A stretch of DNA of 64,000 nucleotides, taken from the IMG/VR virus record IMGVR_UViG_3300043399_000877, positions 62,001 to 126,000 of that record; one strand, 5' to 3'. This document shows, piece after piece, positions 1 to 7,777 of the stretch. Every line of letters begins with the position of its first letter. Within the stretch, counting starts at the first letter, position 1. The notes below the pieces were generated by a model that did no database searches, was not told where the DNA came from, and worked only from the letters and a program-made list of their open reading frames with translations. Both the position numbers and the translations under genes were made by a program.

Positions 1-2359
1 CTTCGATAGCATATGTTGCAGATTTGTCGGGATCTTCTTTTATTTTTTCTTCGCCTGCTGGTATCCTAACATCGAAATACTTTGCATATCTCATATAATT
101 GCGTGTATTTTTTGCTATAGCTGCTTCGCCCTTTTCAAATCTCTTACCCAGCACATGTATCGCATACCAGGTTGCCTCTTCTGAATCAGTTGCAAGTGCG
201 GCTTCGCCTTCGGGGAAACTGTGAGCATCATGATCGAACGTCTGCAAATAATATTTTGCAAGTCCAGCGTTGTCGGCAAAACGCATACGCATCTTTTTAA
301 AGTCATAACCGACATCAAAATACGCTGCACTCTCGGCGGCGTTCATTAGGTCACTTATTTTAGAATTTGGATCTTTTACCAGCTTATCTAGATTGTCTCG
401 AATTTCTTTCTTAACTGTTGGTGAAATACTTGCAAGTTTGGTAGCCCATTCTTTACTGCGCTTTATAAGTGCCATTTGCAATTTGGGTGATGCAAGTTCA
501 AGACTACCGTCTTCGTAGTCCCACACCCGCTGATTCTTGAGGTTCTTCTTAAACCAACGCTCGAATGCCACCCGGTCGTAAGACTTTCCGGGACCGATTT
601 GTTTTGGTAAAACTGGAGCATTTTCAGAGCGGTTGCGTTCGCTGTTGTATATTTTTTCAATTGGAACAATGTACTTCCCGGAAAAGAACACAGCCTGGTG
701 TGGTTCGTTGCTGTGTATAACACCGGCGCCCCGACTATCGGTTGCGTACTCGTACCCGAGTATTCGCATAATGCGATTCCATTCAACTGTTTTTTTAGGT
801 GCAGGCTTGCTGCGTCCTTTTTGCCATTCAGTGATCATGTTTTGTACTGGGTCTGCTGATTCTTTTATCTCAATTCCCATTGCTGCGGCTTTTGATATAA
901 ATTGTTCAACATCATCGGCTGAAACATTATCAGCTGGAAATGCTGCGTCAAGCTCAGCGTATGTTATAACTCCGGTTTGTTTGCCTTTTTTAAGTAACTC
1001 GTTCTTTTTGTCGACACCGGGTGCCGCCGGAGCGGCGGGGGTGTTGCCCAACGGTTCAAACTCAGTCTCCGGTGGTTCTGGTGCTGTTGGGGTGTTAGGT
1101 GCGTAATCCGGATTAGCTTTATAAAAGATCGCAAACGGTCGTTTTAACACGGTGCCATTTTCTTTATTTTTAAGAACAACACCATCCTTCTCGATACCGA
1201 TAACAGTAAAAAGTTTCTTGCCTTTTGGGCTGGTCGCGTTGGCATCATCACCGATTTTAAATTTTAATCCGGTTGTGTCTTTGACGTCGTTTCCGTAATC
1301 TTTGTTGGGATCATACAACTCAACATCTCCGTATGTTAAATCGAAGACCTCAGGGCCGTTATCCATGTCAATTTCTAAAGAACCCGATGATTTATATGCA
1401 TAAGAAACCGTTCCGGTTTTTTTATAATATTCATGACCGGGTTTTGTCACTATAACTTTATCACCATGGTGTATTAACTCCGTTTTTGGTAGGTTTTTTG
1501 GAGGCGCAGTCTTTTTCAGGTATTTGAGCGGTACCTCGATGTAATTGCTTTTAGGAGAACCAACCAAAGCCACTGATGCATGTGGCTGATCCATGTTATA
1601 GTCGTTGCCGTCAAAATGCATGCTCACAACCTTAGCCACAACTTTATCCGGTGCTTGGCTGTTGGACCAAGGTTTACTGTAATCCGTAAAAGCTGGGTTT
1701 ATTTCAACAAAATCACCCTTGCCAAAGTCGACCTTTATATCGCCCATTTTTTTCTTCTTGGCTAATTCCGCACCCATTACGCGAGTCACGTTCCACAACT
1801 TTGATATGTCAGGCCCGGCCTTGTCTTCTTCAAAACTAAATGCATTACTTAATGCTTCTTTTTCGATACGACTATATTCTTCTGGATCAAAGCCCTGTGA
1901 CGTCATATACTGACGCAATTTAGCCATATCGCGTTTGAACTGTTGTTCGGTATATCTTGCAATATCCAGTCCTGCATTGGCGTTACGCGGTGTAAACACC
2001 CATACGAACGGTAAGTCGCCCATGTATTCAACTGCGCTCGCATTACCGGTATTTTTAATTACTCTGAGAACATGCGATAGCGGATAGCTATAAACACCCA
2101 GGGGTGTATCGTATCCGCTGCGTGGGTTTACACCGATCTTTTCTATACCAGTGTAACTCACATAAAGGTCTTCCACCGGTGGATATGTTCTACCACGACT
2201 GTCAGATGATCCGGCCAACCGTTCGTATTTTAATAATTCTTCAGCAGTGTTTTCCTGATACTTTTTTAATTCATCATAATCTGCGGACCTCTGATCTAAT
2301 CTTGGTTGGCCCTTCTCACTGCGGCGGCGCTCTACAATTCGGATATCACGATATTTCAT
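1..2359 (-). CDS. Large late/virion-type protein, 3'-truncated by the window edge; ART-like scaffold with inserted KOW/SH3-like domains and a sigma70 region 1.1 domain, plus C-terminal helical repeats
   Basis: Not in the ORF track because it has no stop in the window. ATG at 2359 overlaps the upstream TGA. Manual translation: MKYRDIRIVERRRSEKG...YVSYTGIEKIGVNPRSGYDTPLGVYSYPL...WNRIMRILGYEY...IHSNEPHQAVFFS, paralogous to 2356..4968. Bases 860-1009 encode KKNELLKKGKQTGVITYAELDAAFPADNVSADDVEQFISKAAAMGIEIKE. Confidence 0.85.
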   Translation of the reverse strand, partial: MKYRDIRIVERRRSEKGQPRLDQRSADYDELKKYQENTAEELLKYERLAGSSDSRGRTYPPVEDLYVSYTGIEKIGVNPRSGYDTPLGVYSYPLSHVLRVIKNTGNASAVEYMGDLPFVWVFTPRNANAGLDIARYTEQQFKRDMAKLRQYMTSQGFDPEEYSRIEKEALSNAFSFEEDKAGPDISKLWNVTRVMGAELAKKKKMGDIKVDFGKGDFVEINPAFTDYSKPWSNSQAPDKVVAKVVSMHFDGNDYNMDQPHASVALVGSPKSNYIEVPLKYLKKTAPPKNLPKTELIHHGDKVIVTKPGHEYYKKTGTVSYAYKSSGSLEIDMDNGPEVFDLTYGDVELYDPNKDYGNDVKDTTGLKFKIGDDANATSPKGKKLFTVIGIEKDGVVLKNKENGTVLKRPFAIFYKANPDYAPNTPTAPEPPETEFEPLGNTPAAPAAPGVDKKNELLKKGKQTGVITYAELDAAFPADNVSADDVEQFISKAAAMGIEIKESADPVQNMITEWQKGRSKPAPKKTVEWNRIMRILGYEYATDSRGAGVIHSNEPHQAVFFSGKYIVPIEKIYNSERNRSENAPVLPKQIGPGKSYDRVAFERWFKKNLKNQRVWDYEDGSLELASPKLQMALIKRSKEWATKLASISPTVKKEIRDNLDKLVKDPNSKISDLMNAAESAAYFDVGYDFKKMRMRFADNAGLAKYYLQTFDHDAHSFPEGEAALATDSEEATWYAIHVLGKRFEKGEAAIAKNTRNYMRYAKYFDVRIPAGEEKIKEDPDKSATYAIE

Positions 2360-4968
2360 TGTTTGTATTTACCCACGTAATGTTTTAAATCTTGTACTTC
2401 AACTTCAGAATGATCACCATACACCCCATATGAAACTATTGCAACTCCGGGTTTCGGGAAAGACGTTATATAACCGGTAAACTTTTCAAGGCTGGTGCCA
2501 TCTCCCCACCAATCTGTGCTGAATTCAACAATATCCCCTAACGAGAAATTCGAAGGTTTTTTGTATGTAGATGAATTAAATTCAAAAACTTCACTAGCCT
2601 TTACTTTCAATGTTTTATTATTGATTAAAAATATATATTCGTAGCTCTCTTCGATGCCTACCAACATACCGGTATCACCGTTTTTGTTTACTTTGTATTT
2701 TTCACCCAACTTGAAACCATACCGATTTGGTTTTATTGGAGCGATAAATTCCGGTGCAGTCTCATCAAGTTCACCACCACGGTGCATGTCATGAATTTGA
2801 ATACGTTTGTTGTTCTCGGGAGTATTAGCTATCATTACAAGTTTCTGTAAACCGCTCATAACTTCTGCATACATGTCTCCGGGTTTAAACTTGCTCAGGT
2901 CATCATATAACGGAAACTTTTTCCTATATCTACGAATGGCCGAGGACTTCAACGCCATAACATCTTCGGCCTCCGGCCAAGGGCGTTGAAGAACGTTGAT
3001 TGCGTAATCTGCCGCATTGTCAGGACTTAGTTGAATTTGTGGTTCGCCCTTGGGGAATGCTTCATGCAAGACGTTGGCTGCATAATTATATGCGGTTTCC
3101 GGGTCTTTACTGATAGCCTCCTCGCCAGCCGGCCAAGGTTTACGCAAAATACGAGAAGCATACCTGTATGCTCGCCATGAATCATCGGCTATGGCAGATT
3201 CGGCGGCCGGCCACGGCCCCTTCTTTATCTGCTCTATGTATTCCATGATATGTTTGGGGTTTTTCAAAAACGCTTCGTCGGACACTTGTATGTCTTTAGG
3301 GTCACCGGTGTAAGCACTTTCCAAATCACGTATAGCTCGGTTAATGTCATATTCATCTTCGCCGCTGTTTACTAACTTGGCCAAACGATTTGCCTTGGCC
3401 TTTACCACAAGGTAACCGTATTTGCTGCTGGCGCCGTCGATTATGGACAACCAAAGGTCGTTGTCTACCACCAACTTATTAATAAGTTTTTCTGATTGTA
3501 TCTTAACAGTATCCGAATACAGTCCATGTATTTGGTCGTAGTTCTTGTAATGCACTTTTAACCAACGTTCAAATGTTATCGGGTCGTATTTTCCGCTGTT
3601 TATTTGATCAGTTGTATAAGGTGGTCTCACTCTGATATTTCTCGCAGTATTGCGAATCTTGCCGATAGGGGTAAAATAGGCACCGGATAGGAATACAGCC
3701 TGTGTTTCTTCACTGGGATGGATTAGTCCGCTGTCATTACGATCTACGATGAAATCATACCCGGCGACTCTCATCAAACGGTTCCATTCGATAATACTGG
3801 TCTTGGCTCTGGTATTTAAGTTGCTTTCTTCGCGTATTATGGATTCTTTTGGAAATGTAAAATATGGGTCTGGTTCCGGTTCAAATTCTAAATCATCAAT
3901 AACATCAAAATCTACAATATTATCATCAGAGGCGTCGGGTTCTTTTTTTGGTTCAGCGGCCGGTGATTTTAGCACTTTTAAGTATTCTGGTGGCAAGTCC
4001 TTTACTTTCGTCGCTTTTCCAAATATACTGATGCTGAGTTCGAAGGTTTGCCCGACTTTGTTTACAACCTCGCCTTCAAATCCTTCAAACGGTCCCTTGA
4101 CAACCTCAACAGTGTCACCAATTTTAGGCATAGCCTCTATATTAAAAGAGGGTTTCGATTTTTCGGCAGGAACATAATCTACCGGAACGCTTGTTTTTTT
4201 TAAATCGTTCAACGGAAGGCCCTGTAATGGGTAACTGTTAAAATTACCAGATCCCGAATATATTTTTACATCAGCAGTGGTTTCAGTTTTGGTTACCACC
4301 ATCCCCACAGTGTCGCTCCAACCGGTGTACTCGGGTAATTCAACAAAGTCACCCAGTTTTATATTGGAGGGGCCGGAGATTTTCGAAGCGTTTTTAAAAC
4401 TTCCAAAGTCTTTGCCTAACACTCGAGTTGCATTCCAGAACATAGACGCATATATGGTTGAGCCACTGGTTTGTTTGGCTGATGACCAAGCTTCTTGTAT
4501 TTTCTGATCGATAAACTCTTCAGTCAATCCCTGTTTTGATAAGAAAGATCTGATCTTTTCCATATCCTCAAGAAGCTGTTCTTCCGTATAGGTCGCAAGT
4601 TCCAATCCGCGTTCGGGATTCTTAGGTGTAAACAACCAAATATACGGTTGCTTGCCCATATACGGAACGTCACTCGGGTCATTAGATGCCTTCATACGCT
4701 TCAAAGCATATTCAAGAGGATAGCAATAAACACCGATAGGAGTATTATACCCGCTCACTGGATTGATGCCAATTTTGTCTAATCCAGTATAGCTTATATA
4801 CAGGTCGCGCATATCTATACCTGAGTCAAGGGCCATACGTTCCAAATCTTTTACAGCGTTTTCACGAAACTGATCTAAATCATCACTGCTGGCCCTGTCT
4901 TTGTGAACTCTGGGTACACCTTTTTCGCTTCTGCGACGTTCTACAATTAATAAATCACGATATCTCAT
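2356..4968 (-). CDS. Large late/virion-type paralog; ART-like scaffold with an inserted NusG-CTD-like KOW domain, helical repeats and C-terminal KOW/SH3-like domains
   Basis: 887-aa ORF; probable start MRYRDLLIVE at 4968, just downstream of TGATAAATAC. Contains IGDTVEVVKGPFEGFEGEV...SISIFGKATKV and WPxxExxIxxDxxxAYxYA repeats. Confidence 0.85.
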   Translation of the reverse strand: MRYRDLLIVERRRSEKGVPRVHKDRASSDDLDQFRENAVKDLERMALDSGIDMRDLYISYTGLDKIGINPVSGYNTPIGVYCYPLEYALKRMKASNDPSDVPYMGKQPYIWLFTPKNPERGLELATYTEEQLLEDMEKIRSFLSKQGLTEEFIDQKIQEAWSSAKQTSGSTIYASMFWNATRVLGKDFGSFKNASKISGPSNIKLGDFVELPEYTGWSDTVGMVVTKTETTADVKIYSGSGNFNSYPLQGLPLNDLKKTSVPVDYVPAEKSKPSFNIEAMPKIGDTVEVVKGPFEGFEGEVVNKVGQTFELSISIFGKATKVKDLPPEYLKVLKSPAAEPKKEPDASDDNIVDFDVIDDLEFEPEPDPYFTFPKESIIREESNLNTRAKTSIIEWNRLMRVAGYDFIVDRNDSGLIHPSEETQAVFLSGAYFTPIGKIRNTARNIRVRPPYTTDQINSGKYDPITFERWLKVHYKNYDQIHGLYSDTVKIQSEKLINKLVVDNDLWLSIIDGASSKYGYLVVKAKANRLAKLVNSGEDEYDINRAIRDLESAYTGDPKDIQVSDEAFLKNPKHIMEYIEQIKKGPWPAAESAIADDSWRAYRYASRILRKPWPAGEEAISKDPETAYNYAANVLHEAFPKGEPQIQLSPDNAADYAINVLQRPWPEAEDVMALKSSAIRRYRKKFPLYDDLSKFKPGDMYAEVMSGLQKLVMIANTPENNKRIQIHDMHRGGELDETAPEFIAPIKPNRYGFKLGEKYKVNKNGDTGMLVGIEESYEYIFLINNKTLKVKASEVFEFNSSTYKKPSNFSLGDIVEFSTDWWGDGTSLEKFTGYITSFPKPGVAIVSYGVYGDHSEVEVQDLKHYVGKYKQ

Positions 4969-4990: not shown

Positions 4991-5000
4991 GTATTTATCA
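4991..5000 (-). promoter_or_regulatory. Putative late promoter (TGATAAATAC)
   Basis: T4 late-like ATAAATA about 25 nt upstream of the ATG. The same motif precedes 5361..7697, the GIY-YIG gene, 51400..52170, the tRNA-Arg/endonuclease unit and the 63803 gene. Confidence 0.65.
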
Positions 5001-5065
5001 ACACAGGCTTGACAAGCACCTTTGTTGACGTTAGTATATGCTAGACCCCGCTGTTGGTATATCAT

Positions 5066-5371
5066 ATGCATAGAAGCTATATCGGAACATTTCGTTACGA
5101 CCCAAACAACTTATGGAAGAAGATGAGTTTGACCTCTCGCGAGGACGTCTTCAGTCGGCTATCTGATGTACAGCAGCGTTGGTTGGAAAACAATGCGCCA
5201 GACTGGAAGTTTTGGCATGACGAATTCCGACGACTGCATTACCATATCTACTCCGAAACTCCGATATCAGACAGTCGTTTGACTATGGCTGGAATGATAT
5301 TCTATCAGGAAATTCCCAGCCATCCGCCGTTGGGTGAAGAAGCATTGTGGGTTGATGTTTTTAAGAGTTAA
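5066..5371 (+). CDS. Hypothetical small early protein
   Basis: Own TTGACA-N17-TAGTAT promoter at 5009-5037; lies between two minus-strand genes. Confidence 0.6.
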   Translation: MHRSYIGTFRYDPNNLWKKMSLTSREDVFSRLSDVQQRWLENNAPDWKFWHDEFRRLHYHIYSETPISDSRLTMAGMIFYQEIPSHPPLGEEALWVDVFKS

Positions 5372-7697
5372 ATGGTTCAACAGTAAAAGCGTCATCGCCA
5401 TATTCGTCAACTGCATCCTGGTAATCCTGTTGCGTTAACGCTTGTCCGAAGTTCAATCCTGTCAGTCCCGGTTCATCAACAATATATTGGTATTGTTTTA
5501 GTACATTGTAAAACAATGGGTCCAAATTTTTAATCCTAGTCGCCCAACTGGGGTTTTTCTGTATGAGTTTTTGTTGAATATTAGTGGGTGCTACTATTGA
5601 TTTTCTGTCATACTTTGCCGGATTCGGATTTGTTTTGAGAATGTAATCTAGCAGATCTGCGGGCTTGAATTTTTCAGGATCGGCTTCCAGTTCGCGGCTG
5701 TAAGCATCGGCATTGCGTATTTTTTCAACTACAGTGAATGCGGCCTTGCTGAAGAATACCGCCTGAGTGGGTTCATTTTCGTGTATGGTTCCGCTATCGA
5801 AATCAACGGCGTAATCATATTTTAGCACATTTCTCATTAACCAGTTCCATGCAACTGGTGTTCTGGAATTTAACTCGAGGTGACGTGCAGCAAACATTCT
5901 GGTGACATTCCATATTTGGCTGGAGAAAGTTTCTTCATATGCTTGTCCGGCATATTGTTCTACTCTAAAATGAAAATCTTTCTCGTCCATGTAATCGCCG
6001 TTTACGAAGAATTTTTCCATCTTCCAAACGTCGAGTTCATAGTCATCTTTGGTATAATAGTTGGAGCCCAACCACATTGCCTTATCTGGATTGTTGGCTT
6101 TTAACACCCATATAAACGGACTCATGCCGGCAAACGGCACAGCCGCGGCGGTCTTGTAGTCATACATATTTTTGTATATTTCTTTGGTCAACGGGTATGT
6201 ATAAATCCCAATAGGAGTGTCAAACTGACTTCTGGGATTAATTCCTATTTTGTCAACTTTTGTATAACTTATGTAGTAGAATTCGTCTTGGTTTACATAC
6301 TTTTCCAGACTGTCCAGCGCATATGACCTAGGATTCTTGTCAGGATTTCTTCTCGCTTCCGGGACAGATTTGGTCGTGTTTTCAGACAATCCAAAATGTC
6401 GTTGATATTCCTTCCAGATATACGGACTCTGTTTTATAGCTGCTTCACCTGCAGGCCACGGTTGTTTCAAAATCTTTTGGGCATACATCATGGCGGGCCA
6501 ACTGTCTTTTGCTATTGCTGGTTCACCCTTTTTAAATCTTTGCTGATTTAGTGAATGAAATGCATATAGATAAGCACTCATGCCATCTTTTGCTATAATG
6601 TCTTCCAAGTGCGGCGCTGGGCCTTTGTAGAATCGGGATGCTAGATCCTGCGCTGCTCTTGCTTCCCTAACTTCGTTGGAGTACAAAGAAACTTTTGGTT
6701 GACTTTTTATAAATGCTGTGTCAAATTCGTCTCGTTTTTTCTCATCTGACATTAAAATAGTTTTTACATCTGAACCGAGATGCTCCCCGGCTTTACGGTA
6801 ATAATACACTAACTCTTTTCCGTCGAGTTTCCAGAGTAAGAAAACAAAGTTGGCTTCAAGTGCCATTTCTTGACGATCTGTGGGGCCTGGGTCGTTGTAA
6901 TAGCCGTCTTCGTCGTCACCGGTTGGATCGCGTTCGGCATAATCTACTACTTCACCCAAAACTTCAAGCATGTTGTTTTGATTTTTGTCAAACAGCTTGG
7001 CAGTTACCGGATTTTGCTCCATAAAATATCGTGCGTCTTCAACTCCCAGTGGCTGGTCTTGAGAGTCCATAAATTGTCCGCTATCAAAATGGAACTGATA
7101 TTTTTGTTTGCGCTTTTTGTCGTGCCAGATATAAAGTGGACCGTATTTTGTATAATAATTATACATGTTTTTCTTTTCATCGGAGGCCGCCGTACACCAT
7201 TTGGTTCCGCTACCCAATGCACAACTGGCTTCACGAGTCTTGGGAACGGTAAGAATTCCCAGCGGACCGTTGTAAAGCACTTCCGCATCTTTAACTCCGG
7301 CGGCATCTGTATCAGCTGCACCAAGATCGGTATTGCTCAATTTGGCTGCAACATCAGCCAACGATCGCCAATTGTATTGATTTATATCACTATTGATGTT
7401 AAGGCGCTTGTGTTGTCCTTTGGTTTTAACGAATGTTTCGAGATCTGCCCGTAGTTTGTAGATGTCTTCGTATTTGAGCCCGTTCTTTATATATTGACGA
7501 ATTATCCAGACCACATACTGCTTGTTGGCAGTTGGGTCAGCTTCTTCTGCCGCCTGTAGCACTGCCTCCACCGGATCAGCACCCCGACTTTTTAAATATG
7601 CATCGGTCTTTGCCCGGTCAGCAATCGCATTGCTGAAGTTTGCAAGTGTTTTTGATCTGTCATATTCTAGGATTGTTTTGATTTCTTTATATCTCAT
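5361..7697 (-). CDS. Large late/virion-type paralog: N-terminal SCxLGxGTxWC domain, helical repeats, and an uninterrupted ART-like scaffold
   Basis: 788-aa ORF; probable start MRYKEIKTILE at 7697, after TGATAAATA (7718-7726). Contains YISYTKVDKIGINPRSQFDTPIGIYTYPL...KYDYAVDFDSGTIHENEPTQAVFFS. Confidence 0.85.
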   Translation of the reverse strand: MRYKEIKTILEYDRSKTLANFSNAIADRAKTDAYLKSRGADPVEAVLQAAEEADPTANKQYVVWIIRQYIKNGLKYEDIYKLRADLETFVKTKGQHKRLNINSDINQYNWRSLADVAAKLSNTDLGAADTDAAGVKDAEVLYNGPLGILTVPKTREASCALGSGTKWCTAASDEKKNMYNYYTKYGPLYIWHDKKRKQKYQFHFDSGQFMDSQDQPLGVEDARYFMEQNPVTAKLFDKNQNNMLEVLGEVVDYAERDPTGDDEDGYYNDPGPTDRQEMALEANFVFLLWKLDGKELVYYYRKAGEHLGSDVKTILMSDEKKRDEFDTAFIKSQPKVSLYSNEVREARAAQDLASRFYKGPAPHLEDIIAKDGMSAYLYAFHSLNQQRFKKGEPAIAKDSWPAMMYAQKILKQPWPAGEAAIKQSPYIWKEYQRHFGLSENTTKSVPEARRNPDKNPRSYALDSLEKYVNQDEFYYISYTKVDKIGINPRSQFDTPIGIYTYPLTKEIYKNMYDYKTAAAVPFAGMSPFIWVLKANNPDKAMWLGSNYYTKDDYELDVWKMEKFFVNGDYMDEKDFHFRVEQYAGQAYEETFSSQIWNVTRMFAARHLELNSRTPVAWNWLMRNVLKYDYAVDFDSGTIHENEPTQAVFFSKAAFTVVEKIRNADAYSRELEADPEKFKPADLLDYILKTNPNPAKYDRKSIVAPTNIQQKLIQKNPSWATRIKNLDPLFYNVLKQYQYIVDEPGLTGLNFGQALTQQDYQDAVDEYGDDAFTVEPFNS

Positions 7698-7777
7698 ACT
7701 AACTAAGTCCTTTGGTATATTTATCAACAGACTGTTGACATGCTGGACAGCTGACTATATAGTATGCGGGAATAGGG

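Follow-up and report, generated by a model that had tools for sequence, protein, structure and literature searches.

A NusG-type KOW domain inserted into a predicted ADP-ribosyltransferase-fold protein of an uncultured T4-like jumbo phage, a candidate address label of a putative injected effector

The DNA analysed here, called the window throughout, is a stretch of 64,000 nucleotides corresponding to bases 62001-126000 of the 381,886-bp virus record IMGVR_UViG_3300043399_000877, which is graded complete by CheckV; the standard genetic code sufficed for its translation and no alternative code was used. Its minus strand carries ParB, an 870-aa open reading frame (ORF; window 2356-4968, with the ATG at 4968 and the stop codon at 2356-2358), which is the middle gene among three tandem minus-strand paralogs, designated ParA, ParB and ParC. 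ParB bears a KOW domain of the type found at the C-terminus of bacterial NusG, placed as an insert inside a scaffold domain that is predicted to adopt an ADP-ribosyltransferase (ART) fold. The explanation favoured here, held tentatively and with somewhat less than even confidence, is that ParB is injected and acts as an ART-like effector, with this captured NusG-type KOW directing it to Rho or to ribosomal protein S10. ParB would be a variant of the injected phage ART effectors and polyvalent proteins, and no description of its architecture was found in the literature searched.

The KOW comprises ParB residues 280-335 (window 3964-4131, minus strand), exhibits the loops GPFEGFEG and SISIFGKAT, and was delimited by profiles, BLASTP and a structural model. 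The initial annotation had described a mimic of the NusG C-terminal domain at window 3975-4131, in one member of a set of paralogs; the peptide is real and the protein that carries it is indeed one of the three tandem paralogs, with the correction that the minus strand encodes it, as MPKIGDTVEVV...SISIFGKATKV, ParB residues 280-331. The plus-strand reading of the same interval contains stop codons and was rejected. The proposal that the segment is more than a generic KOW was borne out when NusG models were scored beside those of other KOW families, and the likeness to NusG far exceeds what chance would give. The KOW fragment matched the NCBIfam model TIGR00922 nusG with 30.3 bits (E 3.4e-7, model positions 121-162 of 172), followed by UpxY with 24.4, mycoplasma NusG with 22.6, archaeal/eukaryotic-type L24 with 17.0 and LoaP with 13.7 bits, and no match to the RfaH model was obtained in the NCBIfam scan. 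The same fragment scored 35.5 bits against PHROG 6386, annotated as 'transcription antiterminator', and 26.6 bits against the Pfam KOW model PF00467 (cut-off 22.3), the latter value being 21.7 bits inside the whole protein, and a genome-wide PF00467 search gave 26.2 bits at ParB as the only KOW match in the phage genome. BLASTP against residues 131-172 of E. coli NusG displayed 43% identity (E 1e-6) across both GPF..F.G and S-I-F-G-[RK]-A-T, and when the entire E. coli K-12 chromosome was searched in all six frames, NusG 129-172 was the sole match at E<=10. Bacterial NusG C-terminal domains aligned across the entire KOW in a sequence search of the PDB, where L24 and single Spt5 KOWs reached only its first 20-30 residues.

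The AlphaFold model of ParB residues 1-462 agrees with these searches, the KOW being predicted at a pLDDT (predicted local distance difference test) of 90-96 with five strands within residues 286-334. The modelled domain superposed on the NusG C-terminal domains of T. maritima (Z 9.7, 1.1 Å, 32% identity), Aquifex (Z 9.3, 1.5 Å, 33% identity) and E. coli (Z 8.8, 1.4 Å, 32% identity), and the KOW barrels of Spt5, L21e, NdhS and eukaryotic ribosomal proteins gave similar Z values with 12-26% identity and mostly larger root-mean-square deviations. Since the profile scores, the whole-genome search of E. coli and the 1.1-1.5 Å superposition agree, the ParB KOW is NusG-type and not generic; it looks like a homologous, captured domain and not the convergent look-alike that the word mimic had implied. 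The likeness to the bacterial NusG C-terminal domain (TIGR00922; PDB 2jvv, 2xhc, 1m1g) thus covers the predicted five-stranded barrel, both loops and 32-43% identity. A true NusG paralog was also considered and rejected, because no NGN domain was found in ParB by Pfam and NCBIfam scans of the whole 870 aa at E<=1, the NusG models matching only the KOW part (positions 119-162 of 172). Unlike NusG, ParB therefore cannot sit on RNA polymerase in the manner of NusG, and its KOW is an insert within another domain of an 870-aa phage protein, with two residues fewer than NusG between the two motifs. In NusG, the I164-F165-G166 loop provides key contacts to Rho, and grafting this loop onto RfaH confers Rho binding, while S10 is bound by both NusG and RfaH (PMC7593976); Rho and S10 are the known direct partners of the bacterial NusG C-terminal domain (PMC13753749). 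Because the I-F-G loop is kept in ParB, Rho is a candidate partner. A predicted complex of ParB 268-336 with E. coli S10 scored 0.30, under the mark of 0.34, and is counted neither for nor against binding.

The KOW lies in a scaffold that is interrupted at one particular place. In ParB, the N-terminal half of the conserved ART-fold scaffold covers residues 35-190 (window 4399-4866; all ParB features are on the minus strand) and the C-terminal half covers residues 386-445 (3634-3813), both by alignment and model. Between the halves are an SH3/Tudor-like beta-barrel as the first insertion module (residues 200-262, window 4183-4371, model pLDDT 84-91), the KOW, and a disordered linker (residues 336-385, window 3814-3963) that is Pro/Lys-rich and then acidic, with pLDDT below 50 for residues 341-385. 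The model depicts the KOW as a well-folded barrel flanked by disordered linkers, within the helical subdomain of the scaffold, and the SH3-like barrel and KOW together match tandem KOW or tandem SH3-like structures in Foldseek. ParA (1004 aa; window 2-2359, minus strand, running past the window start, genome 61345-64359) is located directly downstream of ParB, its start overlapping the ParB stop (ATGA), and the ParB-ParA gene pair is kept on another metagenomic contig. ParA contains a sigma-70 region 1.1 at residues 453-503 (window 851-1003, minus strand; Pfam PF03979, E 5.7e-12), the sole such match in the phage genome, and this region occupies the same scaffold insertion site as the ParB KOW, the scaffold of both proteins being interrupted at a common point, around profile positions 170-177. 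That point is an insertion hot spot, occupied by inserts in many members of the family. In ParC (778 aa from the ATG at 7697; window 5361-7697, minus strand) the domain order is permuted, the scaffold is uninterrupted, and neither a KOW nor a region 1.1 insert is present; its contiguous ART-fold domain, residues 445-705 (window 5613-6395, minus strand), was modelled with pLDDT 83 and a predicted template modelling score of 0.78. Distant family members combine KOW motifs with sigma-70 region 1.1, and the KOWs of those members are generic, the NusG-type loops being confined to the ParB lineage. Several KOW-like segments were also recognised in ParA by inspection. One or two copies of region 1.1 are found at the C-termini of the relatives P0076, P0112, P0120 and P0010.

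The shared core domain has about 230 residues, is contiguous in ParC and many relatives, and includes in the models a four-helix subdomain that hosts the insertions. An exhaustive HMMER search retrieved 4506 representative proteins sharing modules with ParB, most of which match only the helical repeat segment, and the present description provides a first annotation for a scaffold recurring among more than 4500 representative metagenomic proteins of this kind. Twelve residues (K, N, P, T, P, Y, W, D, I, H, E and Q) are invariant in an alignment of 35 core domains and all are present in ParB, where the invariant scaffold positions are T61, K65, N69, P70, T76, P77, Y81, Y83 and W178 in the N-terminal half and D409, I416, H417, E420 and Q423 in the C-terminal half. 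The fold assignment of the ParB scaffold was taken from the contiguous ParC copy. With the ParC core as query, Foldseek against the PDB gave a cyanophage A4 pre-ejectosome protein (E 1.4e-4) and AcrIF11 (6kyf, E 0.046), with further matches to ParT, PARP1 and a diphtheria-toxin homolog; a VIA search of the PDB placed the pre-ejectosome chain at Z 7.7 over 168 residues, followed by NatT, ParT, RES toxins and PARPs at Z 4.5-5.6. Matching structures in the ESM Atlas were ART-PolyVal, AcrIF11, DUF3990 and MuF-fused clusters, those in BFVD were ART-PolyVal proteins of Yersinia and Brevibacillus phages and of uncultured myoviruses (E 2.5e-5 to 1e-4), and those among the AlphaFold DB clusters were ART-PolyVal, DUF3990 and RES. 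For ParC, a feature search of the ESM Atlas pointed weakly to an ART, and for P0138 it returned nothing. With five structure libraries agreeing, the scaffold is predicted to have the split beta-sheet fold of the ART superfamily, and because this fold is accompanied by a full set of invariant polar residues, the scaffold domain is probably an enzyme.

The predicted scaffold has a fold in common with AcrIF11 and with the ART-PolyVal/Tox-ART-HYD2 domains found in polyvalent proteins of phages and plasmids (PF18760, PF26151), and its setting resembles that of ART-PolyVal, which occurs in large multi-domain tailed-phage proteins predicted to enter the host. The active site of ART-PolyVal consists of H on strand 1, Y on strand 2 and D, or more broadly D/E/Q, on strand 5 (PMC5512222). 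Predicted strand 2 of the scaffold carries the invariant Y81/Y83, the predicted strand starting QAVF carries the invariant Q423, and the invariant H417 and E420 (H-x-x-E) fall in the loop preceding the Q strand. Unlike ART-PolyVal, the scaffold has an extra four-helix subdomain, its H-Y-D site is not evident, and neither PF18760 nor PF26151 matched any of the 35 family members (E<=1) or the genome (E<=10). The best solved structural match, the cyanophage A4 pre-ejectosome protein (9k3a chain B, residues 1418-1645), resides inside the capsid and is expelled from it; it differs in belonging to a podovirus, in its 10-12% sequence identity, and in having no KOW or region 1.1 insert.

Features of the gene and of its N-terminus point to late expression and delivery from the virion. 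ParB begins with a 10-residue signal, MRYRDLLIVE (window 4939-4968, minus strand), which resembles the T4 capsid-targeting propeptide; its residues 8 and 10 are I and E, in agreement with an L/I-x-E prohead-protease site. The N-termini of the paralogs (MKYRDIRIVE in ParA, MRYRDLLIVE in ParB, MRYKEIKTILE in ParC) are 10-11 residues long and end in I-x-E, most family members start alike, E10 is invariant in 25 sequences, and both models show the first 15-23 residues as disordered. A stricter pattern of this signal occurs in only four ORFs of the phage genome, and a looser one in 16 ORFs, of which 13 fall into one cluster at 48-70 kb and another at 304-309 kb. T4 internal head proteins possess a 10-residue capsid-targeting sequence in which residues 8 and 10 govern processing, cleavage taking place after L/I-x-E (PMC9026906, sections 2.5-2.6), and Alt, an injected ART, is handled in a similar way (PMC9026906). 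By analogy, the N-terminus of ParB is a putative capsid-targeting signal, which would annotate a candidate signal of this kind in uncultured jumbo phages. The genome encodes a T4-type S77 prohead protease (genome 191368-191793; PF03420, 90 bits). A T4 late-promoter-like motif, GATAAATA, lies at window 4992-4999 on the minus strand, 24-31 nt upstream of the ParB ATG, and again at 7718-7725 on the minus strand upstream of ParC, there inside the TGTTGATAAATA box; this box is common to ParB and ParC, about 24-31 nt before each ATG, so that two of the three paralogs have late-promoter-like motifs ahead of them. The pattern [GT]ATAAATA has 59 sites in the genome, of which 34 precede called genes by no more than 60 nt (12-58 nt); many of these genes are large and seem to encode structural proteins, and by this distribution the pattern behaves like a T4-type late promoter. 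Given the N-terminal signal, the prohead protease and gp23-type capsid gene, the late-promoter-like motifs and the structural match to an ejectosome protein, packaging of ParB in the capsid and injection with the DNA would be the most economical reading.

A second minus-strand cluster, at genome 303-309 kb (303991-308917), encodes proteins with N-termini of this type (MKFLEF.., MRFSEFSNINE.., MRLDDLSE.. and MRLRELITE..), and by their sequences these too resemble internal proteins targeted to the capsid. One gene of the cluster (genome 305175-306335) has a C-terminus common with ParC, as well as a Cys/His-containing segment like that in the N-terminal part of ParC.

T4 Alt, which acts on host RNA polymerase (PMC5512222, PMC9026906), is a precedent for such a protein. 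Like Alt and the T4 internal proteins, ParB appears to be a late gene product with a short propeptide ending in L/I-x-E, in a phage with a T4-type prohead protease, and with a predicted ART-superfamily fold; delivery with the DNA and an aim at the host gene-expression machinery would be further points in common. Unlike ParB, Alt belongs to the R-S-E clade and has no borrowed host-factor domain, and the ParB scaffold has other conserved residues and no sequence match to any ART model.

Under the favoured explanation, ParB would be a late product that is packaged into the capsid and enters the cell together with the phage DNA, its central ART-fold domain would probably be an enzyme, and the KOW, hanging on flexible linkers from the helical subdomain, would act as an address label that guides the effector to Rho or S10, the cellular proteins with which the NusG C-terminal domain interacts. 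The effector may then modify or block that partner at the very start of infection, with an outcome such as the halting of Rho/NusG-dependent silencing of incoming foreign DNA. Rho and NusG silence foreign DNA (PMC7593976), and relief from this silencing is a plausible benefit to the phage. ParA would work likewise, its sigma-70 region 1.1 addressing it to RNA polymerase. Two lines of reasoning lead to the address-label function: the few injected copies of ParB could not titrate Rho or the ribosomes, which an enzyme can nevertheless act on, and the location of the KOW on flexible tethers in an ART-fold enzyme, together with the region 1.1 at the same site in ParA, suggests a pair of address labels. 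Of the roles proposed in the initial annotation, recruitment for the targeting of a modification is retained as the best fit, as the KOW is inserted in a domain with a predicted ART-superfamily fold and ParB looks injected and capsid-targeted, while titration of Rho or S10 is unlikely with few copies per virion. The wider generalisation is judged less likely than not; in it, a family of capsid-delivered ART-fold enzymes of aquatic jumbo phages, seen to date in metagenomes only, plugs pieces of host transcription factors into one permissive loop as interchangeable address labels, and could covalently disable various components of the gene-expression machinery within seconds after the DNA enters. 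Although T4 Alt and other injected phage enzymes have been described, the means by which they reach their targets are largely obscure. If the explanation is true, the targeting device is readable from the sequence as a host-factor domain grafted into an enzyme, and the targets become predictable, namely Rho/S10 for ParB and RNA polymerase for ParA. It would also suggest how phages might overcome Rho/NusG silencing of foreign DNA as infection begins, and the swappable-address design could be used to steer enzymes to chosen bacterial complexes.

Several observations weigh against this explanation. None of the sequence models of Pfam, NCBIfam, PHROGs and the PDB recognises the scaffold, so the ART assignment rests on structure prediction, and the fold-match scores are moderate (template modelling scores of 0.3-0.55, up to 0.63 by target, and Z below 8). 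Predicted strand 1 shows S/Y/T and no His, by which catalysis may be altered or lost. The A4 pre-ejectosome protein forms a structural layer of the ejectosome, and no enzymatic role is described for the matching region (PMC12002296). Analogy with T4 is the whole basis of the candidate capsid-targeting signal. In the ParB KOW, K replaces R167 of NusG, and the I-F pair, unlike in NusG, varies among the ParB orthologs, becoming I-Y and M-F. The KOW is moreover the least conserved and fastest-evolving folded module, with 37-41% identity among three orthologs against 60-85% for the scaffold. Finally, the ParB DNA, the ParB protein and a typical family member had no match among 50,697 GenBank phages, and the ParB family is thus absent from cultured phages.

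These points are partly shared by a structural alternative, in which the KOW is one of several small SH3-like barrels of an internal head or ejection protein, serving packaging, spacing, or contact with DNA or RNA, its NusG likeness being a leftover of its origin with no Rho or S10 partner. A second small barrel adjoins the KOW in the model and the sequence of the C-terminal 170 residues suggests more, ParA has its several KOW-like segments, other family members bear only generic KOW motifs devoid of the I-F-G loop, the KOW evolves faster than the scaffold, and the solved structure most similar to the scaffold belongs to a DNA-contacting structural pre-ejectosome protein (PMC12002296), all of which are in keeping with such a role. 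It is set back by the persistence of both NusG-specific loops at about 40% domain identity, by the KOW being closer to NusG than to any other KOW class, and by the transcription-factor domain at the same site of ParA, which packaging needs hardly explain; this alternative is accordingly judged fairly unlikely. A different partner might instead be bound by the KOW, for instance RNA polymerase or nucleic acid in the manner of Spt5 KOWs, NusA or other antitermination components, or a phage protein, with ParA and ParB both acting on the elongation complex. The joint occurrence of KOW motifs and region 1.1 within one protein in distant members hints at a target complex shared by the two, the paired barrels of ParB look like the tandem KOWs of Spt5 and kin17, and the NusG KOW touches several partners in antitermination complexes (PMC7593976). 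Yet the closest domains by both sequence and structure are bacterial NusG C-terminal domains, for which the known direct partners are Rho and S10 (PMC13753749), and the KOWs that are fused with region 1.1 elsewhere are generic and not NusG-type, which makes another partner improbable.

Without any enzymatic step, the KOW could also be a stoichiometric decoy, competing with NusG for Rho and so causing anti-termination, or for S10 and so causing uncoupling. Phage anti-Rho proteins such as P4 Psu are known, the NusG binding loops are retained, and ParB, having no NGN domain, could not deliver Rho to RNA polymerase. Against these considerations, a protein that appears capsid-delivered would be present in few copies relative to abundant Rho and ribosomes, and a large scaffold with 12 invariant, mostly polar residues would be superfluous for a decoy, so that this possibility is rated as quite improbable.

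Differential conservation was observed along ParB and among its natural variants. The protein P0003 of a public collection is identical to ParB, and the orthologs P0004 (62% identity) and P0005 (53% identity) both keep the KOW, with GPF and G-K-x-T invariant across the three and with 41-54% identity in the C-terminal region. When the KOW region alone was searched against a collection of 5.8 billion proteins, only the query itself was returned, and only three orthologs with NusG-type KOW are known. Reads and contigs of four independent metagenomes show the ParB ORF intact, with nucleotide identity of about 92%; among the differences listed for these natural variants, in-frame length changes occur only in the linker of residues 336-385. 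The KOW-coding interval at window 3896-4223 is identical in one aquaculture metagenome contig, while neighbouring pieces of the same run differ by 3-11%; this identity amid diverged flanks suggests mosaic recombination among strains around the module.

The remaining parts of ParB comprise alpha-helical repeats of about 36 aa (PWPxxE..I......A..YA..VL) at residues 541-700 (window 2869-3348, minus strand) and the C-terminal region at residues 701-870 (window 2359-2868, minus strand), which is small-beta-barrel-like in its sequence pattern on inspection. The helical repeat of about 36 residues is present in up to 20 copies in proteins longer than 2000 aa, and Pfam searches with the repeats gave spurious summed matches only (HTH_35, USH1C_N).

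The jumbo phage is T4-like, with rIIA, a DnaB-type helicase, a primase and a tRNA nucleotidyltransferase in the window and a gp23-type capsid gene at genome 188965-189963 (PF07068, 332 bits). As neither a multisubunit RNA polymerase nor a sigma region 2 was detected in the phage genome, the phage probably depends on host transcription. Near-identical DNA was found in freshwater, estuary, aquaculture and wastewater metagenomes. The G+C content is 50-61% at window 8000-48000 (genome 70-110 kb) and 35-44% in the flanks, and this high-G+C stretch carries rIIA, the tRNA nucleotidyltransferase and many small plus-strand ORFs. In ParC, residues about 146-228 (within window 6980-7697, minus strand) exhibit a G-T-K-W-C-T-A motif and match PHROGs 28193 and 17056, both of unknown function; the segment is possibly another effector module. 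Between ParC and ParB, a 105-aa ORF is located on the plus strand at window 5054-5371.

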